A stretch of DNA of 64,000 nt, taken from positions 859,061 to 923,060 of the forward strand of contig NW_005434667.1 of NCBI RefSeq assembly GCF_000315625.1, in the 5' to 3' direction. Both the position numbers and the translations under genes were made by a program. Position 1 is the first letter of the stretch; every line of letters begins with the position of its first letter. The notes under the pieces were generated by a model. That model was not told the DNA's origin and did not search any database. It saw only the letters and a program-made list of their open reading frames with translations. The stretch is from Guillardia theta CCMP2712 (taxonomy: Eukaryota > Protista > Cryptophyta). Shown here in pieces: positions 1 to 42,724 of the stretch.

Positions 1-15
1 CGTGACAAAGTAGTT

Positions 16-1145: not shown

Positions 1146-1204
1146 CAGTGGGATGGGAATGAAGATGAACATATGTTTCACCTACATTATTCTACCTCAT
1201 CCCA

Positions 1205-1380
1205 TCTACCATCACTCCTCTACCATCACTCCTCTGCCATCACTCCTCTACCGTAGTACAGGCCTCTCCTCTGCCATGTCTCCTCTGCCATGTCTCCTCT
1301 GGCAACTCTCCTCTACCGACTCTCCTCTGGCAACTCTCCTCTACCGACTCTCCTCTGGCATGTCTCCTCTGCCATCTCTC
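1205..1380. repeat. Degenerate ~15-bp tandem repeat (CTCCTCTGCCATGT / CTCCTCTACCGACT variants)
   Basis: Directly visible reiteration of CTCCTCT(G/A)(C/G)C(A/G) units. Confidence 0.8.
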
Positions 1381-9693: not shown

Positions 9694-9886
9694 CTGATAT
9701 ACATATTTATGAGTATATAATATGTGATTTCCATATACCTTCGTCTTTGTAAAGGTCATACTTTCTGATAAAGGACGGTTTAGGTTCTATGGTACCAGAG
9801 TTGTATTTATTCAAGACACGATTAAGGTTATATTTTTCTTGATTAGCTTGTCTATACTGTAGTACCATATTGGTAAGGGATATAGG

Positions 9887-10020
9887 GTGTCTCCACCTCT
9901 CCCTAAGTAGGGGGGGCCGGGGGGGATATGATAGGGGGTTGAAGGTGTGTCTCCAGGGAGGGTCTTATTTTTTTAGGTATATATATACCGATTTCTAATT
10001 AAGGGGCAGGGTGGAGACAC
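9887..10020. repeat. ~130-bp dispersed element, copy 1 (GTGTCTCCACC...GGTGGAGACAC inverted ends, G-runs, GGTATATATATACC palindrome)
   Basis: Near-identical to 11737-11862 (direct) and 17785-17911 (inverted). Confidence 0.92.
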
Positions 10021-10087
10021 ATATGAGATCATCAATACAATCATTATGGAGCATATGAGAATGGTGTGATCTATGCGACTTCCTATA

Positions 10088-11671
10088 TTATTTAGGTAAC
10101 CAACGTGCAAATATGAACTGATTATAGACAGTATTTCTGACACACCATCTCTTAATGGAGGGATCCCACCAAGCTCCAAGTGTTTTGACAGTATCTTTTT
10201 CAGAGAAGGGGCATTTCAAACAGATATAAGAACCACTGCTGTCTTCATAATAATCAAAATCTTCTAGATCTTCTTCATCTTTAGGGCGTTCTGGGAATTT
10301 ATCATTGGGAGCTTTATACCAAGATATAATGTCTTCAATAGACAAGTCATATATACGTTGCTGATATAAATGTATACTGTCATAAATAATATTGAATGTT
10401 AATTTTTGAATTGTAACAGGGTGAAATAATGTAACATCTTGATCTTGAAGAAGAAAAGTGACTTTGTTTTGTTTGAGGGTAGCATAATTATTATAAAAGT
10501 TGCGAATTTTTGCAGCTTGTTTCGAATAATAAGATTTAAATTCGCATGTTGAAGTAGGTTTGTAATCATTGATAAATGGATAAGGTTCAGAGTAGTTGAT
10601 TATAAACTGTTTCATATATTTTAGGTTGGGCAGATAGTGATGAATGAATTTAAGGATTTTCTTGATTATAGAAAGGGTGTCATATTCAGTGAAGGTGAGG
10701 TAAGCATGAAACGCAGGGAATTTGCCAAGGGCATAATCCGCAATCCAATAATTATATTTACTATAATCATAATCATGGACTATATAGGAACAAAATCCGT
10801 CATCATTGAGATAGACAGCAACTCTAAAATGTTTAAAGACAGGATTGAAGAGTTCAATGAGGTGTTTATTATGTTCAATAAGATGTTCTGAATGTTTGTC
10901 AGAAAGAAGGCAATGATGATCTGATGAAAAGTGTGTGGAGGATCCTTTCAATATGTTAATAATAAGCTGATCAAGAACATCTTCATTCCAATTCCAGTGA
11001 GTTTTAGAGCCGTTTAAGAAGGTCTTCAAATCTTTCAAATCATTCAAAGGTTGATTAAGTATGCATTGCTCACATTTTTGTTTTCGAATGCAGTATAATT
11101 CCACTACAAGTTTGTTAATATTATTCAATAAGGATTTAGCGTCAAATTCAAACCATGGTTCAGGTCGACAGTCTTCACTTGTAAAATGTGAATTACATAT
11201 TTCGAATATGGCGGATATCTGAGTATCATGAACAACAGCTACATCAGCGATTTTAGTGCTATCATTATATTGAAATCTATGTTCAAGGTGGACTTGACAT
11301 GTAGAAAAATCAGGAGCCTTCCAATCGTGTATGAGATGTTTGCAAACATAGCAATTACGCATGACCTTGAATGGTAGGCATTTTTCTAAGAATTGCTTAA
11401 GCGCAATTTTAGCATCCTTGTGGATTTGTGACTCAGAAGGATTATTATAGTAGGAGCAAGGTTCATCATCTTTGTGATGTGCAAAATGAAAGACTCGTTT
11501 TTTGCCTTGGCGGAGTATTAATGTTTTGTTGCATTGAGGACAGATATACTCTTCCTTCTTGTTAGCAAGTCTTGGACAACAATATTGTCCAGTTTGTTTG
11601 TGAATAGCTGCCAAACTGTAAATATGAGACGTCATAGTCCGCACTAGTATATGTATAATATAGTTGAGCAA
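10088..11671 (-). CDS. CoiA-like zinc-ribbon plus PD-(D/E)XK nuclease protein with a C-terminal DUF5710-like motif (probable start MTSHIY)
   Basis: YICPQCNKTLILRQG..RVFHFAH and ESQIHKDAK (CoiA N-terminus); IADVAV...IFEICNSH (nuclease motifs); CPFSEKDTVKTLGAWWDPSIKRWCV (DUF5710-like). Confidence 0.75.
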   Translation of the reverse strand: MLNYIIHILVRTMTSHIYSLAAIHKQTGQYCCPRLANKKEEYICPQCNKTLILRQGKKRVFHFAHHKDDEPCSYYNNPSESQIHKDAKIALKQFLEKCLPFKVMRNCYVCKHLIHDWKAPDFSTCQVHLEHRFQYNDSTKIADVAVVHDTQISAIFEICNSHFTSEDCRPEPWFEFDAKSLLNNINKLVVELYCIRKQKCEQCILNQPLNDLKDLKTFLNGSKTHWNWNEDVLDQLIINILKGSSTHFSSDHHCLLSDKHSEHLIEHNKHLIELFNPVFKHFRVAVYLNDDGFCSYIVHDYDYSKYNYWIADYALGKFPAFHAYLTFTEYDTLSIIKKILKFIHHYLPNLKYMKQFIINYSEPYPFINDYKPTSTCEFKSYYSKQAAKIRNFYNNYATLKQNKVTFLLQDQDVTLFHPVTIQKLTFNIIYDSIHLYQQRIYDLSIEDIISWYKAPNDKFPERPKDEEDLEDFDYYEDSSGSYICLKCPFSEKDTVKTLGAWWDPSIKRWCVRNTVYNQFIFARWLPK

Positions 11672-11736
11672 GCTTTATATGAATTAACCAGAGGATATAT
11701 AGAATGATCTATACGAGAATGGTAAGGGTTTGATGA

Positions 11737-11862
11737 TGTCTCCACTTCTCCCTAAGTAGGGGGGGGGGACATGATAGGGGTTGAAGGTGTGTCTCCAGGG
11801 AGGGTCTTATTTTTTTAGGTATATATATACCGATTTCTAATTAAGGGGCAGGGTGGAGACAC
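11737..11862. repeat. ~130-bp dispersed element, copy 2
   Basis: Direct repeat of 9887-10020. Inverted identity with copy 3 extends over ~11729-11920 / 17727-17919. Confidence 0.92.
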
Positions 11863-11987
11863 ACATTATATGATGGAGGCTTGGTTGGGTTGTAAGATGA
11901 GGATGGTAAGGAGAATATATATAAGGGTCTTAAAGAAAAAATAGGAAAGCCAACAGGATGTAAATAAAATATAAGAGAGATGAGGAT

Positions 11988-12257: not shown

Positions 12258-12484
12258 GAGGGAGTGTAACCCACGCCTTTTAGTGGGGAAGTTAAATGAC
12301 TTAGCCAGGGGATTTGTCCGAAAGTTAATTGACTAACCCCTGTAGATTTTAAATTTGGAAGAAGGTGAATAAAGGGGATATAAGGAAGGATGAGAAGCGA
12401 TGTGTGACCCACGCCTTTTAGTCCATGGGGTTCCATAAAATATTGTTGAGAAGTGTAAAAAATGTAGATAAGAGGTAAGAGTAG

Positions 12485-13840
12485 ATGTCAAAATCCGATT
12501 CGCCGGTGAGGGCAAGTGTGGTTTCTTCATTGTTGGCTCAATCGCCAACGACGGAGTATGTGGATAAGGAGTTGATAACAAAGGTGAGACTGTTTAAGCT
12601 GACGAGGGAGGAGTTTAGCTATATATGTGGAGATGAGAGAGCATTTGATATATGCATGAAGCTGATGGGCATGAACAAGAGACAGCTGAGGTCATTATGT
12701 AGGAGCATAGGGATACTATTTGAGGATGGATCGGGCGATTCGAGTGAGATTCATAGAAAGATAAATAAGAAGGGATATTCAGGATTATCATTGAGTAATC
12801 TGCCAGCAGATATGAAGGAACATATAATAAGAGAGTACATGAAGATAGTGGTTCCAAGATTATTGGATTGGATAGATTTAAAGAAGTTGGAATTTCCGTC
12901 GTTATTAGGGAATCCGAGTGAGGGCATGATATTACTGATAAAGAAGCATTTTAAGAGCAAGATAATGTTTATGACGAGATTATTGTATGATGATTCAATA
13001 GAGGATGATTATATAATTGATAAGATGACTGCAATAGAGAATCTAAATAAGAATCCGAGTGATGCGGCGATAAAGTTTTTGGATAAGTATTATGATTTGA
13101 TAAGGAGTGAAATTTTGATAGAGAACAAGAATGTGAGAAGTTTGAGATTATTTAATAAGCACCGTAATTGGGAGTCGAGTTCGGGTTCTGAGGAAGAAGG
13201 GTTAAGTTTGGATGATAAATTACCAACAACAGATATATTATCAAAATGTATTCATGATGAGATATTTGAGAAATATATAGAGAAGGACAATAGATATGTA
13301 AATCTAGGATACTTGTCAGGGAATACGAATGATCGAGCGATAAAGATAATAGAGTCATATAGAGATAGGGATTATAAGAAGAGTGAGAATAATAAGGTAG
13401 ATTGGAAGAAGTTATCGAGAAATCCATCGAATGCGGCAGTGAGATTTATGAGAAGGAATGAGAGTAAGATAGATTGGGCAGAATTAAGTGGGAATACTAA
13501 TACAGAAGCGGTAAGATTTATGATAAGTCATCCGAATAAGATATATTGGCCAGCGTTTATTTCGAATAGCAATGATGTAGCGGTGGATTACACTCTACGA
13601 CCAGAGAATAGAGCGCATATACTTGAAGTAGATGGTATGTTTTGTTTAAATTCGAATGAGAAGGCTGTAGATTGGTTGATAGAGAATAAGAGAAGACTGT
13701 CACCTTACGAATTACGTGTTTTGTCATGTAATTCAAATCCGCGAGTGATACCCTTATTGCTGGAGAGGAAAGCAGAGATAGATTGGAAACGTTTATCGTC
13801 AAATCCAATAATAATTGCTTATAGAGAGATGAGATGGTAA
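12485..13840 (+). CDS. F-box-like plus (I/V)DWxxLSxNP repeat protein (paralog of 19828-21153)
   Basis: LSLSNLPADMKEHIIREY (F-box-like); repeats VDWKKLSRNPS, IDWAELSGNTN, IDWKRLSSNP. N-terminus nearly identical to 19828-21153. Confidence 0.8.
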   Translation: MSKSDSPVRASVVSSLLAQSPTTEYVDKELITKVRLFKLTREEFSYICGDERAFDICMKLMGMNKRQLRSLCRSIGILFEDGSGDSSEIHRKINKKGYSGLSLSNLPADMKEHIIREYMKIVVPRLLDWIDLKKLEFPSLLGNPSEGMILLIKKHFKSKIMFMTRLLYDDSIEDDYIIDKMTAIENLNKNPSDAAIKFLDKYYDLIRSEILIENKNVRSLRLFNKHRNWESSSGSEEEGLSLDDKLPTTDILSKCIHDEIFEKYIEKDNRYVNLGYLSGNTNDRAIKIIESYRDRDYKKSENNKVDWKKLSRNPSNAAVRFMRRNESKIDWAELSGNTNTEAVRFMISHPNKIYWPAFISNSNDVAVDYTLRPENRAHILEVDGMFCLNSNEKAVDWLIENKRRLSPYELRVLSCNSNPRVIPLLLERKAEIDWKRLSSNPIIIAYREMRW

Positions 13841-17649: not shown

Positions 17650-17784
17650 TCTCTCTTTCTATATTATCATATTACTCTTTATATCTCTTCAATTATACTC
17701 CTTCATTCTCAATCTTTCTCTTATACATATATTCTCCTTACCATCCTCATCTTACAACCCAACCAAGCCTCCATCATATAATGT

Positions 17785-17911
17785 GTGTCTCCACCCTGCC
17801 CCTTAATTAGAAATCGGTATATATATACCTAAAAAAATAAGACCCTCCCTGGAGACACACCTTCAACCCCCTATCATGTCCCCCCCCCCTACTTAGGGAG
17901 AGGTGGAGACA
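17785..17911. repeat. ~130-bp dispersed element, copy 3 (inverted)
   Basis: Reverse complement of 11737-11862. Confidence 0.92.
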
Positions 17912-18011
17912 TCATCAAAATTCTTACCGTCCTCATGTTAACTTTTTATTATTCATATTGAAATAAATACCATATCAATATAAGTATATCTTTCATATAT
18001 TCCAATAGCAA

Positions 18012-19827: not shown

Positions 19828-21153
19828 CTAATCTCTATACTCAAATATTATTGGATTCGAGGATAAAAAATGCCAACGTATCTCTGACTTTCTCTCTCGC
19901 AATAAAAGTCTCACTCGAGGATTTGGATTGTTCGACAAATTCAGCATATAGATCTCTTTATTCGTCTTGTGCTCTATTAACCAATCTATCGCCTTGTCAT
20001 TCGGATTACAACACAATGCTCTCACATCTAAACGCCTATCGTTATTTAAAACAAAATCCACCGCTTCATCATTGCTATTTATACAAAAATTTATCCTATG
20101 GATATACTGTTGATTTCTTAGCAAAAATCTTACCGCTTCCGTATTCGTATTCATACTAAAAACACTTATAAATATCTTGCTCTCATTTCTTATCGTGAAT
20201 CTCACTGCCTCCGTATTCGTATTCTTACTGAAATTCATCCAATCTATCTTGCTTTCATTACCTATCATAAATCTCACTGCCGCATCCGATGGGTTCTTCG
20301 ATAATATCTTCCAATTCACCTCATTATGATCATCTATCTTATAATCTCTATCTCTATATGACTCTATTATCTTTATCGCTCTCTCATTCGTATTCCCTGA
20401 CAAGTACTCTAGATTTACATATCTATCGTCCCTCTCTAAATACTTATCAAATATCTCATCGTGGATACATTTCGATAAAACATCCGTCAATGGTAACATG
20501 CTCTTGCGCATCAATAATCTCAAACCTCTCACATTCTTGTTCTCTATCAAGTACTCCTCCACTATATACTCTGGATGCTTCCCCAAAAAATCTATCGCTG
20601 CATCACTCGGGTTCATATTTAGATTGCGCAATCCGGCACTCTGATCTCGTGGTTTAAATCTCAATAACTCCTCCAACTCTTCCTCAAAATGCTTCTCTAT
20701 CACGTTTATCATCCCCTCACTCGGATTCCCTAAAAGATCCACTAATATTAATTTCTCTGGATCTATCCAGTCCAACAATCTCGGTGGCATCATCCTCTTG
20801 TACTCTGTCACTATTCGCTCCTTCATCTCTGTTGGTAGCTTGCTCAATGATAATGTTAAGTTCTCCTTCCTAATTATCTTTCTATGTATCTCACTCGAGT
20901 TGTCCGACCCATTCTCGAATAGTATGCCTATGTTCCTACATAATGACCTCAGCTGTCTCTTGTTCATATCCATCAGCTTGATACATATCTTGAATGTTGT
21001 CTCATCCTCACATATATGGCTCAACTCCTCCCTCGTCAGTTTAAACAGTCTCACCCTCGATATCAACTCCTTATCAACATACTCTGTAGTCGGTTCTATT
21101 GCAATCAGTGATGACACCACATTTGCCTTCACCGGTGAATTACTCTTTGACAT
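19828..21153 (-). CDS. F-box-like plus (I/V)DWxxLSxNP repeat protein (paralog of 12485-13840)
   Basis: LSLSKLPTEMKERIVTEY; VNWKILSKNPS, IDWMNFSKNTN, IRWHFLSSNPIIF. Confidence 0.8.
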   Translation of the reverse strand: MSKSNSPVKANVVSSLIAIEPTTEYVDKELISRVRLFKLTREELSHICEDETTFKICIKLMDMNKRQLRSLCRNIGILFENGSDNSSEIHRKIIRKENLTLSLSKLPTEMKERIVTEYKRMMPPRLLDWIDPEKLILVDLLGNPSEGMINVIEKHFEEELEELLRFKPRDQSAGLRNLNMNPSDAAIDFLGKHPEYIVEEYLIENKNVRGLRLLMRKSMLPLTDVLSKCIHDEIFDKYLERDDRYVNLEYLSGNTNERAIKIIESYRDRDYKIDDHNEVNWKILSKNPSDAAVRFMIGNESKIDWMNFSKNTNTEAVRFTIRNESKIFISVFSMNTNTEAVRFLLRNQQYIHRINFCINSNDEAVDFVLNNDRRLDVRALCCNPNDKAIDWLIEHKTNKEIYMLNLSNNPNPRVRLLLRERKSEIRWHFLSSNPIIFEYRD

Positions 21154-21194
21154 TTACTCTTATCTTTTATCTACATTTTTACCTTAGAGTGAGC

Positions 21195-25838: not shown

Positions 25839-26834
25839 ATGGAAGATTATAAGCTCTTGCCATGGATCAATGTTGATGACCTGTATCTGGATTTTCTTAT
25901 AAACAATCCACACCCAACTGCTCTTAAGATTATACGCGACAAGCATCTTGGTAAAATATTGCATGAAATGAAAAAGAATCCATCAAATGATGATTATGAT
26001 CTCTTTTGGAATTATATCTCAAAGAATGAGAATGCCTTGGACATCATTGAGAAAAATATTCAACATGTCAATTGGAAATTGCTATCTACAAATCGTGCTG
26101 CCTTTGACATATTGAAGAAGAATCCTACGAAGATAGATCATGAATATCTTTTGAGAAATCCACACCCTGATGTCATTAAGATCATCAATCTTCAAGAGTG
26201 CAAGTGTCATGATAGCACAAATCTGAGCAAATTCCTGAATAATCATGCCAATTCAGATGTCCATAATAAATTCATTGAAGACAACATAGACATCATTCTC
26301 AAGAATATACGCATTGACAGTTATTTCTGGTATGATTGTCGGAACAAGCATGCCCTTGATCTCTTTCAAAAAAGATGCAATAAAATAGATTGGTCTAAAT
26401 TATCTCTGAATCCAATTGCAATTGACATCTTGAAGAAGAATCTTGACAAGGTAGATTGGAACAATCTCAGCAGGAATGATGGTGCATATGATATCATTAT
26501 GGAAAACAAACAAAAGATCAAATGGAAATATGTGTTCTATAACAACAACATCAAGCTCAAGGATTTCTTGCTCGAAAACAAAAAGAAGCTAGATACTGAC
26601 ACTAGATTCAACATGTTGATTTTCGAGCATGACACTTGGAAACTAGATCTGATCACTGAAAGACAGTTCATGAACAGTGTCAAGAACATATGTTACATTG
26701 GAGATGCAATGAGGGATTATTTTGCAACAGCCACGACAAAAGAACTCAACCTTCTAAACAACAAAAAATGGTTCCAAGGGTATGAAAGTTGCATGGCATA
26801 TATGAGTGCAAATCCTAATATCTTTCAGGATTAG
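25839..26834 (+). CDS. (I/V)DWxxLSxN repeat protein
   Basis: YKLLPWINVDDL N-terminus; VNWKLLSTN, IDWSKLSLNP, VDWNNLSRN; C-terminal NPNIF. Confidence 0.82.
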   Translation: MEDYKLLPWINVDDLYLDFLINNPHPTALKIIRDKHLGKILHEMKKNPSNDDYDLFWNYISKNENALDIIEKNIQHVNWKLLSTNRAAFDILKKNPTKIDHEYLLRNPHPDVIKIINLQECKCHDSTNLSKFLNNHANSDVHNKFIEDNIDIILKNIRIDSYFWYDCRNKHALDLFQKRCNKIDWSKLSLNPIAIDILKKNLDKVDWNNLSRNDGAYDIIMENKQKIKWKYVFYNNNIKLKDFLLENKKKLDTDTRFNMLIFEHDTWKLDLITERQFMNSVKNICYIGDAMRDYFATATTKELNLLNNKKWFQGYESCMAYMSANPNIFQD

Positions 26835-31216: not shown

Positions 31217-32338
31217 ATGCCGCCACACATTACACAATTTTTCCAAAAACAATTCGAGGATCATTTCAAGGCCTTCCTCAAGCATGAGATGCGAATGCCT
31301 CTTGAGGATAACAACAATGATGTGACCATCTTCTGCCGGGATGCTGTGCTGTCACTTATTGAGAGGATTGTTGATGCTATATCGAGCATCTATGAGCAGC
31401 TCCCAAACCGCACTGCGGTCAAGGCATATCCCGATATGTTCCTAGCCATCCATATGGTGCTCAGCCGTGATCTTGCTACACATCTTACCAGCAGGATCGC
31501 CAATACACTCTCTGAGTGCAATCTGATAAATATCAAACGCTACAACTATGAAGAGATTGAGGTCTCATTCAGCGTGGATATGATAGAGGAAATTGTAAAG
31601 AACAGGACATCCTTGAAGACATCCATGGACCTATATGTTGCGCTGGATGCGTGCATATCTTACATGTTGGAAGAGATATTCAGCCAATTGAAGCAGAATG
31701 GAAAACAACCCATCACTCTATCTAATGTCAAGGAGACTATCATGAGGGATGAATCACTCAGGGCCGCATTCTTTGAGGATGTCCTAGGAAAGCCAAAGGA
31801 CTTCAAGATCAAATCCAAGGCATATGCCAATAAATCCGCACAGGGCATTACAAAGGCCACGTATGAGGTAATGCTCCAGAGATATCTAAATCAAGGCATC
31901 AAGGTATCCAAGGAGGCATATGCTAGCATCACAGGGCATCTTATGACATATATGGATATGCTGATGCGCGCTGTGCTGGACATCAGGAGGAACAGCATCA
32001 CATTGAAGGATTGCCTAGAATCTTTGCACAGGCACAATCTTGCTCTAGCAATGGCCTTCAACTACATAACCGAATACCACAACAACAAGACAGCAAAAGA
32101 GATATTGGATGGATTTGAACCCAAGACCCCATGTGAGATTGTTGTAGGATGCATCAATGAGATCGTGTTGCAATACGCACCAAAGAAAAAACTGGATGAT
32201 GATTCAATGAGGTTGATGCATGCCGTGTTTGAGGCATATATTGCTAATATCCTTGTTGAATCCAGCATGTTAGTGACATTGCAAAAGAAGAAGACAATCA
32301 AGATTGAACACACAAACTATGTTGCAACAATGTTATGA
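31217..32338 (+). CDS. Putative fused histone quadruplet (H2B-H2A-H4-H3-like folds)
   Basis: aa ~13-98 H2B-like (LIERIVDAIS...NRTAV...LAIHMVLSRDLATH); ~115-186 H2A-like (SFSVDMI...VALDACISYMLEEIF...TIMRDESL); ~207-272 H4-like (AQGITKAT...KVSKEAY..ITGHL); ~305-372 H3-like (EIVLQY...MHAVFEAYIANIL...KKKTIK). Confidence 0.75.
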   Translation: MPPHITQFFQKQFEDHFKAFLKHEMRMPLEDNNNDVTIFCRDAVLSLIERIVDAISSIYEQLPNRTAVKAYPDMFLAIHMVLSRDLATHLTSRIANTLSECNLINIKRYNYEEIEVSFSVDMIEEIVKNRTSLKTSMDLYVALDACISYMLEEIFSQLKQNGKQPITLSNVKETIMRDESLRAAFFEDVLGKPKDFKIKSKAYANKSAQGITKATYEVMLQRYLNQGIKVSKEAYASITGHLMTYMDMLMRAVLDIRRNSITLKDCLESLHRHNLALAMAFNYITEYHNNKTAKEILDGFEPKTPCEIVVGCINEIVLQYAPKKKLDDDSMRLMHAVFEAYIANILVESSMLVTLQKKKTIKIEHTNYVATML

Positions 32339-33050: not shown

Positions 33051-33749
33051 ATGGCATTGAAAGATGCTCTTATCACGTCGAATAAGGAGGATTTTAGTGA
33101 GGGGATCTTTGGACAATTCTTGACATGGTTGCTTGAGATATTGAATCATATGGTAACATCTAATATAATTGATGATGAAACTAGGATATATTTTGATATT
33201 CACACATTGGAGTATGATAATATCATTCCTTTAATTATAGTTCCTCACAAGCATTATTTATTGCCAGCAACCGATATACATAGAATAGATGTGTCAAGCT
33301 ACAAGATAGCCAATGATTGTGAATTCCCTTTCTGTGAGGAAAGCTTCTATACAGCAAATCATATTTTTAATAAGTTCTTTGATTTCTCAGATTCTATTAA
33401 AACAAATATACCATCTATAGATCGCTCAACATCGGTTGGAATCCATTTTCGTGGATCGGATAAAAATTTTGATATAGGTCAGGCAAATCCTATATCAGAT
33501 GAAGAATTCATTCTAATTGTTCAAGATTTTCTTAACAAGAATAGTAAAATTAGATGCATATACTGTTGTAGTGATGAGCAACTGTTCATAAACAAGATGT
33601 TAGATCGATTTGGAGCATCCTATGATGTTTTGCAGTATCAGCAGAAACAAGCAAACAATACCAACAGAATGGGGTTCTTTAGATGTGCTAAATCACTCCC
33701 TAAAGAACAAAGGGATTCATACATATCTCAAACCACTCTTCCTCAGTAA
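33051..33749 (+). CDS. NodZ/GT23-type fucosyltransferase-like protein, probably 3'-truncated
   Basis: SVGIHFRGSDK (motif I) and IYCCSDE (motif II). Motif III is not visible, and the tail overlaps a convergent ORF. Confidence 0.65.
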   Translation: MALKDALITSNKEDFSEGIFGQFLTWLLEILNHMVTSNIIDDETRIYFDIHTLEYDNIIPLIIVPHKHYLLPATDIHRIDVSSYKIANDCEFPFCEESFYTANHIFNKFFDFSDSIKTNIPSIDRSTSVGIHFRGSDKNFDIGQANPISDEEFILIVQDFLNKNSKIRCIYCCSDEQLFINKMLDRFGASYDVLQYQQKQANNTNRMGFFRCAKSLPKEQRDSYISQTTLPQ

Positions 33750-34253
33750 ATGAGTATGCACATTTATCTATGATAATATTGAGCAAGCCCTCATTCATCG
33801 TGTCAAGCAAATTGAATTGTGTGCGCTCCAGCTTATCTGATATATGTGTCACATTCTCTTGAATGAACTTCAAATATCTCTTAAGATCTAATCTATTGAG
33901 AAAATTGTTTATGTCCAAAGGGCTTGTGATGTGGCATTTAGATATATCAAGCAAATCCACAGCATCAGGATTTTTGTTAAACCATATAGAATCGTGCACA
34001 ATCTTTTCTGGATAGGCCTTCAGAATATCTAACGCATTCTCATTCTTTGATAACTCACTCCAATAAACATTGGACAGGTTGTCTCTCAAGATATCGATAG
34101 CACCCTTGTTTGCTGAAAGCACCTTCCAATCAATCTCACCCAAATTATCCTTCAACAATTCAATTGCATCTTCATCATCCTTTGCTGAAAGCACAGACCA
34201 ATCTATAATATCAAACCTGTGCTTGATGATCTTAGCATATATCTTAGTGCTCT
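33700..34253 (-). pseudogene. 3' part of an IDWxxLSxN repeat-protein gene interrupted by the Fanzor transposon
   Basis: IDWSVLSAK, IDWKVLSANK and VYWSELSKNE repeats. Joins 37526-37730 in frame (VEFNAL-KSTKIYAK) to give a 252-aa protein. Confidence 0.88.
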
Positions 34254-34331
34254 TAGAGTTGTTTGCGTTTTTATGTTGGGAAGCGAAGCTTGCCACAGGC
34301 AACACTTATTTTTGTACTTGAATATGTAAGG

Positions 34332-35392
34332 ATGTATTCTAGAACTTATCCGGCTGGAGAGGTTATCAAGGCTCTTGAAGTTTATAACAATGTAAAGAGT
34401 CTTTCTCTCAAACTTTCATTGAAGTTTGAGAGTGGAAGGCTTCATACATCACCGGCATTAGCAAATCCACCATTCAGAGATGGTGGTCAAACCTTAGAAT
34501 GACTATCAGACGCAAAGACAAACGCAAACGACGTTTCAAGCGCCGTCATAAATATCCTCATCTAAATGATGTCATAAAGCACCTCTTCTATCAAAACAAA
34601 GACATCGCCTTCATGCATCTAAAGCAAATCCAATATACGTTGAACCTATCTTATGACATCTCTCCATCATTGACATCTCTTTATCGAGTCCTAAAACAAT
34701 CTAAGATATCAAGGCGTCGCGACTTTGTCGCTTTTTGCCGACCGCCAAAGGCGGAGGCAAATCGCTTCAGCATCCACCATATCAATCCAACAAATCCAAG
34801 TGATAGAAAGGCCAGGTTTTCAGACTTCAAGGCCTCGATAGATCCATTATTGAACGACAATATCGTTTGTCTGGATGAGACCTCATTCTGCAATGTTGGC
34901 AACCCTTTTTATGGCTACTTCCCCAAGGGAAGACAACCCAACGCAATCAAGGTATCAAAACGTGAAAGAGTATCATTGGTCATGGCTGTTCACTCTTCTA
35001 TTGGCATTGTTTCTTACAACCGTGTAAACAAGGCCTTTACAAAGGCTTCATTCTTAGTTTTTTTATAGGGTCTTATTCCTAAGCTTCCTAAGAGCACAAA
35101 AGCCATCCTTATGGATAATGTGGCCTTCCATAGGTCTAAGGAGGTTGTTGGCTTGTTGGAACGGCATAAGCTTGTTCCTCTTTATATCCCTCCGTACTCG
35201 CCAAGATGCAACCCCATTGAGGAGGTCTTCTCTCTGTTGAAGAGAGCCTTCCGAACCAAGACAACAAAGAAGTGTCTGGCAGACCGTATTGAAGAGGCAA
35301 TCGACATCATAAAAGGATATAAGGATTTGGATCTTAATTATAAGCATACAAGAGACTATGTTAGAGCGGAATGTCAAACATTAGGATTGTAA
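34332..35392 (+). pseudogene. IS630/Tc1-like DD34E transposase, inactivated
   Basis: HTH (KASYITGISKSTIQRW), LDETSF, MDNVAFH and PPYSPRCNPIEEVFS, with 34 residues between the second D and E. Frameshift at a hairpin (34404-34432) and an in-frame TAG at 35066-35068. Confidence 0.9.
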
Positions 35393-37443
35393 AACGAAAG
35401 GCGAAGGGCTTCTTCAAGTGTGAGGACCTAGTCACAATCAAGGATGCTGTCAAGGCAGCTCATAGGATCATGTCAGATGCGTCCATACTCGTCCGGTCAT
35501 ATTATCTGCGATGGTTCCAGAGCTCATATCCCCTTGATTCAGATGACAAGGAACTTGAGCTTGAGCACTTCCATATATCCATGGCCTGCAGCATAGTCCA
35601 GGGTATAACAAGGCCTCCAGTCCGTGGTGTTGGTCCTGAACAATCTGTCAAGATAGACGTCTTCAATGACATGTTAGATGAGTATAAGAGGCTGTACGAG
35701 CGTGCTCCAAATGATAAAGAGAACGAAACGGACCTCTCTCTATCGCATGTCTTAGCATATTCCATCGACAACCTTCTTACCGCGTATAAAAACAACATCG
35801 AAGCCCATTTCTCAAAATATGTCAAACGCTTCATCCGATGTGATATGTTGGCTAAGGGCTTCAATAAGTCTGAGGCAAACAGAGTGGCGGCAATATATAC
35901 CAATGCCTATATTTATGACTCATCCCTCGACCTGGAACCAGACTTTATGGAAAGATTAGGCCTTGAGGCAACAAGTTATTCATCTCTATTCCCCTCTAAG
36001 ATAAATAAGGGCGGTTTTCCAAGGGTCTATGACCTGAAGGCCAACCCTTGGGTCTATCTTCCAAAGATGGTCATGATAAATCAGGCCTTAGAGACAGACT
36101 TCTCTTCTGTAGAGCATAAGGAGAGGAGGCTGCTCAATCCACTGCCCTTCTATTCATCGTTTGTTCCGATGCACATACGGATTGATACATCCGGCTTATC
36201 GCAGCTGCTGATGACTAAGGATAGGCTTGATGATTTCAAGAGATCTTATCTTGCTGAGTTTGGAGTAAGTCTAAATATAAAGAACAAGGGTGATATGCTA
36301 GCAAGTTTTGAGAAGATCTTTGGCCGGAAGGCAACATCCAATAGAGAGGCCGGATTGTATGCAACAGAGATGTGGAGCTTCTTGACAAACCTGAAGACAT
36401 GCCGTCAATGGAAGGAGCTTGATGGGGTTGTTCGTAAGAACGATCCCAAGGGAACACAATGGATGTTTGACAATGCTGTTGTAACGGACGGTGTTTCAAT
36501 CTCATTCCAGGTGATCGATAACAGCATGTTTGGACGGAAGGCCTTCTCTGGCAGGAAGAAGAGGGTAGCATGTCAGGAGGCCAATGATGAAGAAGATAGC
36601 AAGCAGGTAACAAGAGAAGAGCTAAAGACATCGAAGCTCTTGGGATGTGACCCTGGGAAGAGAGACATCCTAGCAATAACAGATGGCATAAAGACTATCT
36701 GTTACACCAAGGGGCAGAGAGACATGGACACGCATAAGACAATAAGGTTGAGAACCAGTCTGAAGAGGCGCCGAGGCTGCGGCCTAGAGGAGTATGAGAC
36801 ACAGGTGATGAACCGGTTCCAGAAACGGTCATGCCATCCTGAGATGTTTCGACGCTATGCCTGTTCCAGGAAGAGGATGGAACACATGCTGCTTGAATGT
36901 TATTCTCATCCAGTCTTTAGAGAGTTCAAATTCTTGGTTTACAACAAGACTAAGAGCTCCGAACATAGGTTCATGCATAGGGTGTTGGAAACATTCAAAC
37001 GGCCGCAAACAAACCTGAGCAAGGCGAGGTGTGCGTCAGGAGTTATGCGTATGAATGCCTTGAAGGAGGTCCAAAGGCATGGAGATATCATTATAGGGTG
37101 GGGCAACTGGGGAAAGAATCCAAACGCGCTACGATGCTCGGCAGGACCAACCCCAGGCATTGGAATAAGGAGAAGGTTTGAATCGCTGTTCAAAACAACA
37201 ACAGTGCCAGAACACTACACCTCCCAAGAATGTCCGAGTTGTAAGGGACGATGCCTAAGAAAGGCAACTGGCAACCCGATCATGAGACACCATCTGCTTC
37301 GTTGTACAAACGATAGTTGCTGTAGCAGGTGGTGGAATCGGAATGTAGCCGGGGCGTTCAACATCCTAACAAGGCTGTTGGATGGACAAACACTATCCGG
37401 TAACGAAACTACCGGAGACGGGTTAGGAGGTGACGACCTCTAA
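35371..37443 (+). CDS. Fz1: Fanzor1 RNA-guided DNA endonuclease (eukaryotic TnpB/Cas12 homolog), 690 aa
   Basis: TDGVSIS (WED), LLGCDPGKRDI (RuvC-I), IIIGWGNWG (Gly at the canonical Glu position), VPEHYTSQECPSC (shifted Glu and Zn finger), LLRC..C..WNRNVAGAFNI (RuvC-III with Asn). Located in a mariner-type element. Confidence 0.95.
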   Translation: MSNIRIVKRKAKGFFKCEDLVTIKDAVKAAHRIMSDASILVRSYYLRWFQSSYPLDSDDKELELEHFHISMACSIVQGITRPPVRGVGPEQSVKIDVFNDMLDEYKRLYERAPNDKENETDLSLSHVLAYSIDNLLTAYKNNIEAHFSKYVKRFIRCDMLAKGFNKSEANRVAAIYTNAYIYDSSLDLEPDFMERLGLEATSYSSLFPSKINKGGFPRVYDLKANPWVYLPKMVMINQALETDFSSVEHKERRLLNPLPFYSSFVPMHIRIDTSGLSQLLMTKDRLDDFKRSYLAEFGVSLNIKNKGDMLASFEKIFGRKATSNREAGLYATEMWSFLTNLKTCRQWKELDGVVRKNDPKGTQWMFDNAVVTDGVSISFQVIDNSMFGRKAFSGRKKRVACQEANDEEDSKQVTREELKTSKLLGCDPGKRDILAITDGIKTICYTKGQRDMDTHKTIRLRTSLKRRRGCGLEEYETQVMNRFQKRSCHPEMFRRYACSRKRMEHMLLECYSHPVFREFKFLVYNKTKSSEHRFMHRVLETFKRPQTNLSKARCASGVMRMNALKEVQRHGDIIIGWGNWGKNPNALRCSAGPTPGIGIRRRFESLFKTTTVPEHYTSQECPSCKGRCLRKATGNPIMRHHLLRCTNDSCCSRWWNRNVAGAFNILTRLLDGQTLSGNETTGDGLGGDDL

Positions 37444-37549
37444 AACCTAGAACTTAGAGTGCAAAAACGCCATTACGATTGTGATGCCTATTCAAGGGTG
37501 TCCCAAGTGTAAAAAGAAAGCACTCTAAGAGCATTAAACTCTACTCTGT
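37391..37549 (+). ncRNA. Predicted Fanzor omegaRNA: scaffold ~37391-37529 overlapping the ORF end, guide ~37530-37549 from flanking DNA
   Basis: Hairpins TCCGGTA/TACCGGA (37396-37416) and GGTT..GAGGT/ACCTC..AACC (37421-37447). Long-range stem CTTAGAGTGC (37453-37462) / GCACTCTAAG (37520-37529) closes at the element end. Exact RNA ends are inferred. Confidence 0.75.
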
Positions 37550-37730
37550 CAATGTTCTCAATAAGGATGTCTGAAGCGTTCTCATTGCATGATAGATTGT
37601 TCCAAGCCTTGTCGGTCATCTCATCGATTTTTATATTTATGATTTTCATAGCAGTCGGATTATTATTCAAACAAAGACCTTCTATGTCAAGTTTGCTCTC
37701 ATCAACCCATGGTAATAGTCTATAAGACAT
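37526..37730 (-). pseudogene. 5' part of the repeat-protein gene interrupted by the transposon
   Basis: MSYRLLPWVDESKL matches the paralog N-terminus MEDYKLLPWINVDDL (25839). Continues in frame at 34253 once the element is removed. Confidence 0.88.
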
Positions 37731-37776: not shown

Positions 37777-40608
37777 TTGATATTATTTTTACCTATATTT
37801 TATCTTGATGCTCATGTAAAAAAATTCTTGGATAGAAATACTATAATTTTAGATAGCATACAATCACTAGAGGTGGAAAATGATTGCATGTTACTTCATA
37901 CTTTCAAGCAGTGCGCATCACAGGAAATTCAAAGCTTTATGGTCGATTCCTCTAATAATATTCAGTATAATACTCTCCTTAAGCTAAGCAATGAAGAAGC
38001 ATCATCTCAACAGCTTTTGGAAGCATCTCAACAATCTTCAGAAGTATCTCAACAAGAGCAGGCTCCATCCTCAACAAAGAAGACAGCTAAGAAGATCCAG
38101 CAACAACACCAGGCTCCATCCCCAACAAAGAAGACAGCTAAGAAGATCCAGCAACAACACCAGGCTCCATCCTCAACAAAGAAGACAGCTAAGAAGATCC
38201 AGCAACAACACCAGGCTCCATCCTCAACAAAGAAGACAGCTAAGAAGATCCAGCAACAACACCAGGCTCCATCCCCAACCAAGAAGACATCTAAGAAGAT
38301 CCAGCAACAACACCAGGCTCCATCCCCAACCACGAAGACAGCTAAGAAGATCCAGCAACAACAGCAGGCTCCATCCCCAACCAAGAAGACATCTAAGAAG
38401 ATCCAGCAACAACACCAGGCTCCATCCCCAACCACGAAGATAGCTAAGAAGATCCAGCAACAACAGCAGGCTCCATCCCCAACCACGAAGACAGCTAAGA
38501 AGATCCAGCAACAACAGCAGGCTCCATCCCCAACCAAGAAGACATCTAAGAAGATCCAGCAAGAACAACAAGAGCAGGCTCCATCCTCAACCACTATGAT
38601 AGCTAGGACGATGCAGCAATCAGAGATTTTACCTGAAATGCTACAAAATTCTTCAAAACTACCTACAAAAGATACAAGAAAGAGAAAAGCTCGAACATAT
38701 ATTCTACAACACAAATATGATAAGCATCCGCAACAAAAAGTTGATAAGGCTAGGATAACTCTTCCTAAGACAAAACAAAAAAAGGTTGATGATGAAAAGC
38801 AAAAGGAACAGGGTGAAGAAGAAAAGGAGGAAGAAGGAGAGCAGGATGAAGAGGAAGCAGAAGATGATGAGGAAGCAGAAGAGGATCAGGAAGATAGTCA
38901 AGAGGAGGAGGAACAAGGAGACCAGGATGAGGAAGAAGAAGCAGAAGAGGATCAGGAAGATAGTCAAGAGGAGGAGGAACAAGGAGACCAGGATGAGGAA
39001 GATAGTCAAGAGGAGGAAGAAGAAGGACAGCAGGATGATGATGAAGAAGAGGAGCAAGATGATGAGGAAGCAGAAGAGGATCAGGAAGATAGTCAAGAGG
39101 AGGAAGAAGAAGGACAGCAGGATGATGAAGAAGAAGAGGATCAGGAAGATAGTCAAGAGGAGGAAGCAGAGGAGGATCAGGAAGATAGTCAAGAAGAGGA
39201 GGAACAAGGAGACCAGGATCAGGAAGATAGTCAAGAGGAGGAAGAAGAAGGACAGCAGGATGATGATGAAGAAGAGGAGCAAGATGATGAGGAAGCAGAA
39301 GAGGATCAGGAAGATAGTCAAGAGGAGGAGGAACAAGGAGAGCAGGATGAGGAAGAAGAGGAGGATCAGGATGATGAGGAAGCAGAAGAGGATCAGGAAG
39401 ATAGTCGAGAGGAGGAGGAACAAGGAGAGCAGGATGAGGAAGAAGAGGAGGATCAGGATGATAGTCAAGAGGAGGAGGAACAAGGAGAGCAGGATGAGAA
39501 GGAAGCAGAAGAGGATCAGGAAGATACTCAAGAGGAGGAGGAACAAGGAGAGCAGGATGAGGAGGAAGCAGAAGAGGATCAGGAAGATAGTCAAGAGGAG
39601 GAGGAACAAGGAGAGCAGGATGAGGAGGATGAGGATGAGGATGAAGATGAGGATGAGGATGAGGATGAGGATGAGGATGAGGATGAGGATGAGGATGAGG
39701 ATGAGGATGAGGATGAGGATGAGGAAGACGATGAGGATGAGGATGAGGATGAGGAAGACATTCGTAAAATCTTAAGGAAGCGCAGAAAGTTAAACCTTAA
39801 GGAGGAAGCTGAATACAAACAGAGAATTGCAAAAATACGGGGTTCTCTATCAAGAGAACAATATGCCTCTAAACATGTTGGAAAATATCATGTGATAAAG
39901 TTGCAATCGAGGAGAGACAAGGAATTGATTGTTATTAAATCAAAAAAGACAGGAACAAAACACAAGGTCAATCTCCTTGATGGATTTGGTGTTCAACACA
40001 TAGGCCCTTCAAGATCCTTAGGCAAGCATAAGCTTGGAGTGTTTGAATGTGGCATGGAAAATAAGAGTGATAGTACAGTTTATAACAAGAACAATGATCA
40101 AACATATATTACAGGAGGGATTGAGGAGCTTGAATATTTCGCAAATAACAAGGATGTAATATATCCTACAGATAAAGATGATATAGCATTTGACAGCAGG
40201 AATGGGATCGATACAACAAAGGTATTATGCAGAAACATCCCAGTGACATTGGATGACATTCTTGCTTACTTCAAGTCTTATGTGAATAGCAATGTATTTA
40301 TGCAAGGTCTTGTATATTCCGTACATTCTACCTTTTCTGAGGTTAAAAGATTTGTTCGTCGCAAACATGAGAGATACATAACATTTCCAATCACATTCAT
40401 TGATGTCATGACAGATGAGAATGAGAAATTTGTTTTCAAGGCACTGCTGTGGAAGAAGAAGAAGAATTCTAGATATCTTGGTGCAAGGGCAGGTTTTCTC
40501 TTACCAGTATTGTTCATAGTATTGGATTTAGAGGGATTTGTGACATTGTCGAGGATCTGGGATATGTCATCATCTGTGATGGTGAGTGTTTCTTCAAAGT
40601 CATTCTGA
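37777..40608 (+). CDS. Low-complexity protein: 17-aa QQQHQAPSPTKKTAKKI repeats, a very long Asp/Glu tract and a C-terminal globular region; start uncertain, last ~45 aa probably read-through
   Basis: Open 943-codon frame; 51-bp tandem repeats at 38058-38590; acidic repeats at 38790-39760. Confidence 0.65.
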   Translation: MILFLPIFYLDAHVKKFLDRNTIILDSIQSLEVENDCMLLHTFKQCASQEIQSFMVDSSNNIQYNTLLKLSNEEASSQQLLEASQQSSEVSQQEQAPSSTKKTAKKIQQQHQAPSPTKKTAKKIQQQHQAPSSTKKTAKKIQQQHQAPSSTKKTAKKIQQQHQAPSPTKKTSKKIQQQHQAPSPTTKTAKKIQQQQQAPSPTKKTSKKIQQQHQAPSPTTKIAKKIQQQQQAPSPTTKTAKKIQQQQQAPSPTKKTSKKIQQEQQEQAPSSTTMIARTMQQSEILPEMLQNSSKLPTKDTRKRKARTYILQHKYDKHPQQKVDKARITLPKTKQKKVDDEKQKEQGEEEKEEEGEQDEEEAEDDEEAEEDQEDSQEEEEQGDQDEEEEAEEDQEDSQEEEEQGDQDEEDSQEEEEEGQQDDDEEEEQDDEEAEEDQEDSQEEEEEGQQDDEEEEDQEDSQEEEAEEDQEDSQEEEEQGDQDQEDSQEEEEEGQQDDDEEEEQDDEEAEEDQEDSQEEEEQGEQDEEEEEDQDDEEAEEDQEDSREEEEQGEQDEEEEEDQDDSQEEEEQGEQDEKEAEEDQEDTQEEEEQGEQDEEEAEEDQEDSQEEEEQGEQDEEDEDEDEDEDEDEDEDEDEDEDEDEDEDEDEDEEDDEDEDEDEEDIRKILRKRRKLNLKEEAEYKQRIAKIRGSLSREQYASKHVGKYHVIKLQSRRDKELIVIKSKKTGTKHKVNLLDGFGVQHIGPSRSLGKHKLGVFECGMENKSDSTVYNKNNDQTYITGGIEELEYFANNKDVIYPTDKDDIAFDSRNGIDTTKVLCRNIPVTLDDILAYFKSYVNSNVFMQGLVYSVHSTFSEVKRFVRRKHERYITFPITFIDVMTDENEKFVFKALLWKKKKNSRYLGARAGFLLPVLFIVLDLEGFVTLSRIWDMSSSVMVSVSSKSF
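38058..38590 (+). repeat. 51-bp coding tandem repeat, ~10 copies
   Basis: CAGGCTCCATCC(T/C)CAAC(A/C)A(A/C)GAAGACA(G/T)CTAAGAAGATCCAGCAACAACA(C/G) units. Confidence 0.95.
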
Positions 40609-40974: not shown

Positions 40975-41681
40975 ATGATGATGGCGCTGACTGGTCCTCC
41001 TCGCCCCTTCGCTGCCTGCACCCAGTGCCGTCGCCGCAAGACTCGCTGTGACGAGCAGCTTCCTTGCACCCGCTGCCTCCAGGCCGGACGCGGCGATGAC
41101 TGCTCTCGACCAGAGGCTGGTGATGCCGCGCTCGGGACCCCAACGGCATCACGTGGGCTTCGCCGCAGGTCGAGCAAGGCCTGCCTGGGCTGCCAGCTCA
41201 AGAAAGTCCGCTGCGGGGAAGCGCGGCCCTGCGTACGCTGCTGCCGGACAGGGTCCGTGTGCTACGAGGAAGGGGGGCTTCCTCTGGGAGTGGACTTGCA
41301 GGTGTATCAGCGGAGGCGAGAGCAGGTGACCCAAGCGTGCGAGCGCTGCAGGAGGTCGCGACTCAAGTGCGACGCCGAGAGGCCTTGCGGGCGATGCGTC
41401 AGGTCAGGCCAGACGTGTCTGGACGGACGGAGGCGGAGGGGAGGAACTGGGCGATTGGGGATGAAGAGGCAGCAGAGGCCCAGAGCTGCTGGACATTGAA
41501 CGAGCTCGTCAGCCCAGACAGCATGCCGGGAGTGTACCTGACGGAGGGGCCCTGGGGCGAAGAGGAAGAGCAAGATGGATTCCCTCTAGGAGGGTACCTC
41601 CTGTCACCGAGCACGGAGGAGGAGGTCACCTGGGAGAGGCCGGAGAGGCAGGACGATCCTTCACCTTTGTTTGATTGGTAG
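40975..41681 (+). pseudogene. Triple Zn(II)2Cys6 transcription-factor copy with a frameshift near 41430-41460
   Basis: Three CxxCxxxKxxCxxxxPCxxC clusters. The C-terminus equivalent to the intact copy lies in another frame (ORF 41259-41681). Confidence 0.75.
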
Positions 41682-42016
41682 CAGGGAGATCTCTGGTGGG
41701 GAAGGAGAGTTTGATCCTAGCTCTGCGACTGCAGCCTTTGCTAATGATGCATGCCTGATCAACGATCATTTTAATGAAAGGAAACATCCATTTCTATCAC
41801 TGCGCCTTCCAGCTACGCGAGAAAGAATATTCTTGTCCACCAGCCCACCCACTTCTTCACTCAGAGTGGCGATTGTCTTACAGCCTCCTGCTGCCTATTT
41901 CACGACAATTCTGCTCAACCTGATCCTGCTGCCTATTTCACGACAATTCTGCTCAACCTGATCACAACCTTGCTTTATTCCTAGTCCCTCAAGCACTCCT
42001 CCATCCAGCCCTCCTC

Positions 42017-42724
42017 CTACCAAGCAAACAAAGGTGAAGGATCGTCCTGCCTCTCCGGCCTCTCCCAGGTGACCTCCTCCTCCGTGCTCGGTGACAGGAG
42101 GTACCCTCCTAGAGGGAATCCATCTTGCTCTTCCTCTTCGCCCCAGGGCCCCTCCGTCAGGTACACTCCCGGCATGCTGTCTGGGCTGACGAGCTCGTTC
42201 AATGTCCAGCAGCTCTGGGCCTCTGCTGCCTCTTCATCCCCCATCGCCCCGCTCCTCCGCCTCCGCCTCCGTCCGTCCAGACACGTCTGGCCTGACCTGA
42301 CGCATCGCCCGCAAGGCCTCTCGGCGTCGCACTTGAGTCGCGACCTCCTGCAGCGCTCGCACGCTTGGGTCACCTGCTCTCGCCTCCGCTGATACACCTG
42401 CAAGTCCACTCCCAGAGGAAGCCCCCCTTCCTCGTAGCACACGGACCCTGTCCGGCAGCAGCGTACGCAGGGCCGCGCTTCCCCGCAGCGGACTTTCTTG
42501 AGCTGGCAGCCCAGGCAGGCCTTGCTCGACCTGCGGCGAAGCCCACGTGATGCCGTTGGGGTCCCGAGCGCGGCATCACCAGCCTCTGGTCGAGAGCAGT
42601 CATCGCCGCGTCCGGCCTGGAGGCAGCGGGTGCAAGGAAGCTGCTCGTCACAGCGAGTCTTGCGGCGACGGCACTGGGTGCAGGCAGCGAAGGGGCGAGG
42701 AGGACTTGTTTGGGTACCCGCCAT
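42017..42724 (-). CDS. Triple Zn(II)2Cys6 (GAL4-like) binuclear-cluster transcription factor
   Basis: ACTQCRRRKTRCDEQLPCTRC, ACLGCQLKKVRCGEARPCVRC and ACERCRRSRLKCDAERPCGRC, followed by an acidic tail. Confidence 0.88.
   Translation of the reverse strand: MAGTQTSPPRPFAACTQCRRRKTRCDEQLPCTRCLQAGRGDDCSRPEAGDAALGTPTASRGLRRRSSKACLGCQLKKVRCGEARPCVRCCRTGSVCYEEGGLPLGVDLQVYQRRREQVTQACERCRRSRLKCDAERPCGRCVRSGQTCLDGRRRRRRSGAMGDEEAAEAQSCWTLNELVSPDSMPGVYLTEGPWGEEEEQDGFPLGGYLLSPSTEEEVTWERPERQDDPSPLFAW

Follow-up and report, generated by a model that had tools for sequence, protein, structure and literature searches.

The GtFz1 gene of Guillardia theta, which encodes an RNA-guided Fanzor1 nuclease, was found to be the passenger of a 3.27-kb IS630/Tc1/mariner-type cut-and-paste transposon at 34256-37525 of the window, the 64,000-nt stretch of scaffold_7 (NW_005434667) analysed here, in which the scaffold position equals the window position + 859060. 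The published target-adjacent motif (TAM) of GtFz1 coincides with the transposon's own target site. The transposon inserted at a TTAA in such a way that the TAM lies beside the guide match in the empty site only, and GtFz1 is likely to serve it as a homing endonuclease. GtFz1 is one of the four Fanzors by which eukaryotic RNA-guided nucleases were established and one of the three Fanzor1s with solved structures, and for want of a transposon context its natural role had remained undecided. What is new here is the presence of inverted ends and of a decayed IS630/Tc1 DD34E transposase at the GtFz1 locus, which fits known models and completes a known system. These features give direct sequence-level support to the homing model of Fanzors in DDE transposons and supply a concrete family for testing that model, with intact transposases in metagenomic relatives. 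The statements on the sequence made in the initial annotation of this stretch were all confirmed, and its interpretation was supported.

Identity of the gene and anatomy of the element

The intact open reading frame (ORF) of 690 aa at 35371-37443 (plus strand) was 100% identical over 689 residues to the GtFz1 protein in PDB entries 9CER, 9CES and 9CET, and the locus is the experimentally characterised GtFz1 gene. The locus, the protein, the omegaRNA, the scaffold end and the TAM TTAAN are the same as those of the published GtFz1 (Saito et al. 2023, PMC10432273; Xu et al. 2024, PMC11423790). The catalytic residues D427, E614 and N658, the last of which is a non-canonical third catalytic residue (Xu et al. 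2024, PMC11423790), were invariant across 22 homologues. The RuvC-type catalytic residues and the C-terminal zinc-ribbon TNB domain that mark the Fanzor1 class were both found in the protein, although the Pfam Cas12f1-like_TNB match reached 23.4 bits, slightly below the cutoff of 26.3, and the NCBIfam guided_TnpB match was weak.

The element begins and ends with 5'-GAGTG...CACTC-3' and carries imperfect inverted ends of ~29 bp, in which the tip GAGT and, ~22 bp inward, TTGGGACAC were kept at both ends family-wide. Alignment of nine left ends with eight reverse-complemented right ends gave the consensus TAGAGTGnTTT...TTGGGACAC. The TTAA target begins with the T at 34253, next to which stands the left TA of the target-site duplication (34254-34255). 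The left terminal inverted repeat (GAGTTGTTTGCGTTTTTATGTTGGGA..CAC, 34256-34305, plus strand) comes directly after this TA and is split by a 21-nt insertion. The right terminal inverted repeat (GGTGTCCCAAG...AAAGCACTC, 37497-37525, minus strand) was placed by end alignment and by the similarity to the second G. theta copy and to the metagenome copy L002, which stops here. It is followed by the right TA (37526-37527), which is paired within the closing stem of the omegaRNA, and by A and G at 37528-37529 (plus strand), which are the last base of TTAA, invariant in 21 of 21 insertions, and the variable N of TTAAN. All three characters of the IS630/Tc1/mariner group, namely the type of DDE transposase, the TA duplication and the terminal inverted repeats, were thus present. 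In the published supplementary annotation, a conserved block has its start at window 34257, a single base inward of the left end.

The 21-nt insertion in the left end, AGCGAAGCTTGCCACAGGCAA at 34282-34302, interrupts the inverted-repeat motif TTGGGA^CAC and occurs once in the window. The second G. theta copy has a near-identical 21-mer in its right end, at the position that mirrors this one (L001 7045-7066, minus strand), and unrelated GC-rich hairpin inserts were located at the same TTGGGA^CAC motif in the loci L017 and L014. The 21-nt inserts could reflect gene conversion between the ends or a site-specific insertion process.

Boundaries of the element in other copies

The relatives compared were the second G. 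theta copy (L001, on scaffold_348), the marine metagenome copy L002 and 23 further loci with 33-93% protein identity. L001 was 83.7% identical to the window copy over element bases 2-3270, with flanks dissimilar to those of the window, and L002 was 91.5% identical, with the similarity ending at window 37529. L010 and L011 were 99.9% identical to each other through CTCTAA and diverged beyond it. The boundaries that the initial annotation had proposed for this locus were therefore reproduced in independent copies, in which similarity was lost at the same ends.

All 21 distinct right junctions had the form ...CTC|TA|A+N (CTG once) with a variable N, and 12 of the 13 distinct left junctions had the form T|TA|GAGT. 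By a simple binomial estimate made by hand, with A and T at about one third each, both counts were far above chance. TA was present at both ends of every complete copy, and TTAAN directly 5' of the right flank was rebuilt in 11 of 12 complete elements. From the conservation of the right and left junctions across the relatives, the insertion target is TTAA and the duplication TA. The terminal base of the element was C in 20 of the 21 copies, G in one and T in none. Further copies of the element were absent from the window, and no relatives of it were found in the IMG/VR viral contigs.

One pair of contigs, L005 (1150-1215) and L006 (575-640), carried the same element and right flank (99.9% identical) with different left flanks, and L006 had an additional TAGAGT-like stretch at the left tip. 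The discrepancy may stem from recombination, from a scar resembling a footprint or from chimeric assembly, and the pair was left unused because of a possible assembly chimera at a repeat.

The rebuilt empty site and the interrupted host gene

Deletion of 34256-37527 gave ...GTGCTC TTAAG AGCATTAAACTCTACTCTGT (in its longer form TTAAG AGCATTAAAC...), exactly as had been annotated, with the perfect 14-bp palindrome TGCTCTTAAGAGCA at the rebuilt join. The same deletion restored the predicted minus-strand ORF of 252 aa, which runs from 37730 to 33700, and the 22-aa repeat spacing at the join (FNALKSTKIYAKIIKHRFDIID) matched that of the neighbouring repeats. The interrupted gene encodes a 22-aa-repeat protein of an AT-rich virus-like island, its C-terminal part lying at 33700-34255 and its N-terminal part at 37528-37730 (both minus strand). 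Among five alternative deletions, the frame was open only in those congruent with the element plus one TA: removal of 3272 nt (the element and one TA) gave the full ORF, keeping both TAs (3270 nt removed) brought in a stop at residue 86, and removing both (3274 nt) brought in a stop at residue 71. Candidate elements that included both TAs, or TTA and TAA, without any duplication were rejected since the host ORF was not restored. The two halves of the host gene matched a single paralogue collinearly (blastp E = 2e-23); this paralogue lies at 25839-26834 of the window, has fewer repeats and so allows no residue-by-residue check of the junction. No Pfam families were found on the host gene and its paralogues.

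Alignment of the flanks, which had been proposed as a check for a CTTAAG target preference, did not bear out such a preference: TTAA alone was conserved, and the -2 and N positions varied. Outside TTAA, the seven remaining complete sites tested had matches at 0-5 of 9-10 palindromic positions, which is about the chance level, and a longer palindromic target preference was rejected on this account. The insertion site in the window was the most palindromic of the 95 TTAA sites of the island, with 5 perfect extra pairs and 9/12 flanking positions matching, and this high palindromicity is treated as a coincidence particular to this copy. The palindrome GCTCTTAAGAGC at the rebuilt site (34240-34255 + 37528-37545) codes for Ala-Leu-Lys-Ser of the host repeat.

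OmegaRNA, guide and TAM

The published omegaRNA sequences map here, with the scaffold at 37391-37529 (plus strand); it shares the final 17 codons of GtFz1 and reaches 4 nt past the element (TA+A+N). The published GtFz1 omegaRNA, NW_005434667:896451-896603, corresponds to window 37391-37543. The locus thus shows the arrangement known from Fanzor1, a structured RNA at the 3' end of the gene that crosses the element end into the flank. Since the scaffold of the published TAM screen ends with ...AAAGCACTCTAAG at 37529, the guide starts at 37530, where it had been predicted. The native guide and protospacer occupy 37530-37559 (plus strand); small RNAs sequenced from yeast showed the RNA as far as 37543, and the native target in the cryogenic electron microscopy (cryo-EM) work spans the whole of 37530-37559. 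The first 9 nt of the guide occur once in the window. The oligonucleotide GtFz_ntv_TS of the native-guide cryo-EM was found to be the reverse complement of TTAAG plus window 37530-37559, and the "native target" of that structure is therefore drawn from the rebuilt empty site, being its right part.

The TAM given in the initial annotation, TTAAN, agreed with the published 5'-TTAAN. As had also been claimed, TTAAG stands directly before the protospacer in the rebuilt empty site alone, and the filled junction has CTAAG in its place; this is the pattern of OMEGA systems, in which the TAM lies 5' of the guide match in the empty site and not in the occupied one. Mutation of each of the TTAA bases abolished cleavage (Xu et al. 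2024, PMC11423790), so the occupied junction CTAAG should be immune. Among the residues of GtFz1 that contact TAM bases or anchor the duplex (R85, S123, H126, Y130 and Q278; Xu et al. 2024, PMC11423790), R85, S123, Y130 and Q278 were invariant and H126 was nearly so in 22 homologues with 50-93% identity, in agreement with TTAA as the family-wide TAM.

The two arms of the scaffold stem, CTTAGAGTGC (37453-37462) and GCACTCTAAG (37520-37529), were exact and unique in the window, and they closed the minimum-energy fold of the published RNA (-50 kcal/mol, versus -30.5 ± 3.5 for shuffles; z = -5.7). In each of the 10 aligned copies, the closing helix joined the internal UUA to the TA duplicate and the A after it, and two inner pairs showed compensatory changes in the consensus fold of the 10 sequences. 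The stem had been described as reaching 4 nt past the element; this held for the three target-site bases (TA+A), which were conserved, but the fourth pair (C-G) is formed only where N is G, and it was absent from the consensus fold because N varies. The Rfam scan of the window matched no family.

The decayed transposase

The gene of an IS630/Tc1-type DD34E transposase, now decayed, lies at 34332-35392 (plus strand) and was recognised by Pfam DDE_3 matches on its pieces and by blastx to intact homologues of 324-325 aa in the loci L003 and L008. The transposases of L003 and L008 scored 137.8 bits with NCBIfam IS630 (cutoff 100) and 8e-26 with Pfam DDE_3, and the spacing D-79-D-34-E was present in L003, L008 and the window remnant. 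DD34E is the signature of Tc1-type transposases. In the window, residues 1-24 are encoded in one frame (34332-34403) and residues 26-324 in another (34436-35392), the pseudogene being broken by a frameshift at a palindromic hairpin insertion of ~30 nt (~34404-34435) and by an in-frame TAG at 35066-35068. The transposase of the second G. theta copy had the same TAG with a different frameshift. The Fanzor ORFs were intact in both G. theta copies (690 and 687 codons).

The intact relatives encode Asn where the TAG stands at 35066-35068, and the two G. theta copies are 16% diverged and located at unrelated sites. Either transposase function had already been lost in their common ancestor, which was then mobilised in trans, or translation continues through the stop. 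In comparison with the second copy, the window remnant has two short palindromic or GC-rich insertions, that of the frameshift (34404-34435) and one at ~34722-34768. The insertion at 34404-34435 coincides with the "wrna complement" feature of the published supplementary file.

Proposed mechanism and alternatives

The element inserted at the TA of a TTAA within the repeat-protein gene of a giant-virus-like island in the G. theta nuclear genome, and its terminal C took the place of the right-side T of TTAA. The omegaRNA is transcribed through the 3' end of the Fanzor gene and the right inverted repeat into the host flank, which from 37530 onwards is the guide. In the proposed mechanism, the occupied site, CTAAG with the protospacer, would be a non-substrate, and the unoccupied site, TTAAG with the protospacer, would be the exact substrate of the GtFz1 ribonucleoprotein (RNP). 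GtFz1 would then break unoccupied alleles, and repair from the occupied copy would transfer the element, as in homing; candidate unoccupied copies are the other genomes in a virus factory, a co-infecting relative and the homologous chromosome. The comparisons established the anatomy of the element, the TTAA/TA rule, the agreement of TAM and guide with the empty site and the one base by which the occupied site differs, and we infer that GtFz1 cuts the empty alleles in vivo. The suggestion of the initial annotation that an incoming virus carrying the intact host gene would be cut is plausible. The excision of Tc1/mariner elements is staggered, and end-joining footprints keep element bases beside the TA. 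The site left after excision would thus still be without the first T of the TAM, and the natural substrate would be a never-occupied allele, which favours a gene-drive reading over restorative homing.

On a wider reading, to which we give slightly less than an even chance, a giant-virus-borne IS630/Tc1 family has become co-adapted to TTAA, which would serve as the target of the transposase and as the TAM of the Fanzor1, with the omegaRNA hiding the right TA+A in a helix. The terminal C versus T would distinguish self from non-self, and the nuclease would act on never-occupied alleles only, as a gene drive among virus genomes and not as an aid to repair following excision.

Several observations weigh against the homing account. 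The locus L003 is an exception to the target rule, having A and not T before the TA, and its rebuilt empty site would be ATAAC. The transposases are dead in both G. theta copies, with one TAG in common. A natural uninterrupted allele of the host gene was not found, an exact 21-mer scan of viral contigs giving 0 matches and a protein search with the C-terminal half of the host gene giving one distant match only, and the exactness of the rebuilt site is accordingly drawn from the copies, the frame and the repeat spacing. The published RNA sequencing comes from yeast and the published cleavage from assays in vitro, neither of them from G. theta cells. Homing also needs homologous repair off the occupied template, for which no Fanzor example was present in the literature examined.

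Because its transposase is broken and its left inverted repeat is interrupted, the window copy is probably a fossil in G. theta, with the Fanzor ORF and the omegaRNA intact. The frameshift and stop of the transposase, the 21-nt split of the repeat and the published finding that GtFz1 gave no editing in human cells would also suit a locus where nothing works today in G. theta and where the match of TAM and guide is a historical by-product. This stronger claim is rather unlikely, as both Fanzor ORFs have stayed intact despite 16% divergence and decayed adjoining transposases, and as the RNP was active in vitro; it moreover bears only on activity today and is compatible with the mechanism. Restorative homing after excision, in which excision would restore the TAM and target, the Fanzor would cut and repair would reinstate the element as in IS200/IS605, would be served by the same geometry of TAM and guide and was proposed for OMEGA systems generally in a 2026 review. 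We consider it improbable here, since the footprint of TA, a few element bases and TA that is established for Tc1/mariner would leave C or G, not T, 5' of TAAG, a footprint of this kind would be without the TAM and TAM point mutants were uncut, and the excision break is already a double-strand break.

A role in defence or competition, in which the integrated element or a resident virus would destroy incoming related viruses without any copying of the element (superinfection exclusion), is consistent with a target present only in genomes without the insertion, with a host gene located in a virus-like island and with relatives in giant-virus contigs. The guide differs in each copy, however, and is set by the copy's own insertion site, which is predicted by selfish homing and is poor for defence. 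The scan of viral contigs and the protein search yielded neither an intact allele nor a matching virus, and such a role is very improbable. Different boundaries, finally, are scarcely credible. The inverted repeat found mechanically at 34244-34264 / 37517-37537, with the outer boundaries TTAGTGCTCT / AGAGCATTAA, reaches into the flanks, and the outer deletion also keeps the frame open, but the multi-copy comparison refuted these boundaries, as the other copies share nothing outside TA...TA, and the outer deletion leaves a repeat unit of 16 aa; they were rejected. A piggyBac-like element would have the same TTAA target with all four bases duplicated at both ends and a different transposase, whereas here only TA is duplicated, the junctions are TTA|G and C|TAA (TTAG and CTAA, not TTAA twice) and the transposase is of the IS630 type.

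Relation to known systems

In the original GtFz1 paper the locus was described as seemingly without inverted repeats or a clear transposase link, and no transposon link was given in the published accounts mentioning GtFz1 that were examined. In comparison with the published GtFz1, our analysis adds inverted ends of ~29 bp, the duplicated TA and the decayed transposase gene of the IS630/Tc1 type, of which relatives carry intact versions. The arrangement resembles that of the Fanzor1 genes in Mariner/Tc1 elements of algal giant viruses and protists (PGv-1 and PUl-1; Bao & Jurka 2013, PMC3627910), which likewise combine a mariner-type transposase with a Fanzor1 passenger, TA duplications and a viral or virus-derived setting. 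Those elements were described without TAM, guide or empty-site logic. PGv-1 has a third gene, for a GIY-YIG nuclease, and no similarity between its Fanzor and GtFz1 was visible by eye, on inspection without alignment.

The logic of TAM and guide is shared with the TnpB of IS200/IS605 elements such as ISDra2 (PMC13565253), in which the TAM is likewise the left target motif, the guide is the right flank and the occupied site has no TAM beside the protospacer. IS200/IS605 elements, however, use an HUH single-strand transposase, are excised without a scar, leave the target unduplicated and have a scaffold that stops where the element stops, whereas here a DDE transposase and a TA duplication were found, and the duplication and one target base lie within the scaffold. 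The duplication is likewise inside the RNA scaffold in the insect-virus Fanzor1 and Fanzor2* elements (Yoon et al. 2023, PMC10711439), but these have 4-bp TTAN duplications and an unknown transposase, in contrast to the 2-bp duplication within a 4-bp target and the identified transposase of the present element. The 5' duplicate as part of the TAM is an idea put forward in a 2026 review.

The virus-like island

The AT-rich island extends over ~8-41 kb of the window, with a GC content of 32-45% versus 47-62% in the flanks, also given as 33-40% versus 52-60%. Its ORFs are intronless. They encode, among others, an SF2 helicase like the herpes origin-binding ones, a GT25 glycosyltransferase and the family of 22-aa-repeat proteins, and one of them matched HECT weakly; no capsid gene was seen among them. 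The relatives of the element are carried on metagenome contigs of 54-89 kb together with genes for Erv1/Alr, dUTPase, SNF2 helicase, PARP_regulatory, PhoH and glycosyltransferases including GT25, a gene set that we take to be that of giant-virus (Nucleocytoviricota) DNA. Because of its low GC content, its virus-like ORFs and the relatives on contigs of the giant-virus type, the island is most likely an endogenous giant-virus fragment, and the transposon most likely arrived with it or from such viruses.

Other features of the island were observed as well. A 373-aa protein at 31217-32338 had a weak histone-fold match. An inverted duplication, 12458-13589 / 20055-21180 (73-82% identical), contains two repeat paralogues of 440-450 aa that belong to the family of the interrupted host gene. 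A repeat of 100-200 nt was present in three copies that were 96-99% identical (9863-10032, 11712-11923 and 17724-17919), two of them direct and flanking the ORF 10088-11671 (CoiA_N / DUF5710) and the third inverted; these repeats may be the ends of another mobile element in the island. At the right border of the island, an inverted repeat at 40994-42705 was 98% identical, with arms of ~700 nt (segments of 467 + 246 nt) and 60% GC. Tandem repeats of 51 nt (PSPTKKTAKKIQQQHQA units) make up a large part of the ORF beside the insertion (37777-40608, 943 aa), and after them comes a long low-complexity tract rich in Glu and Asp.

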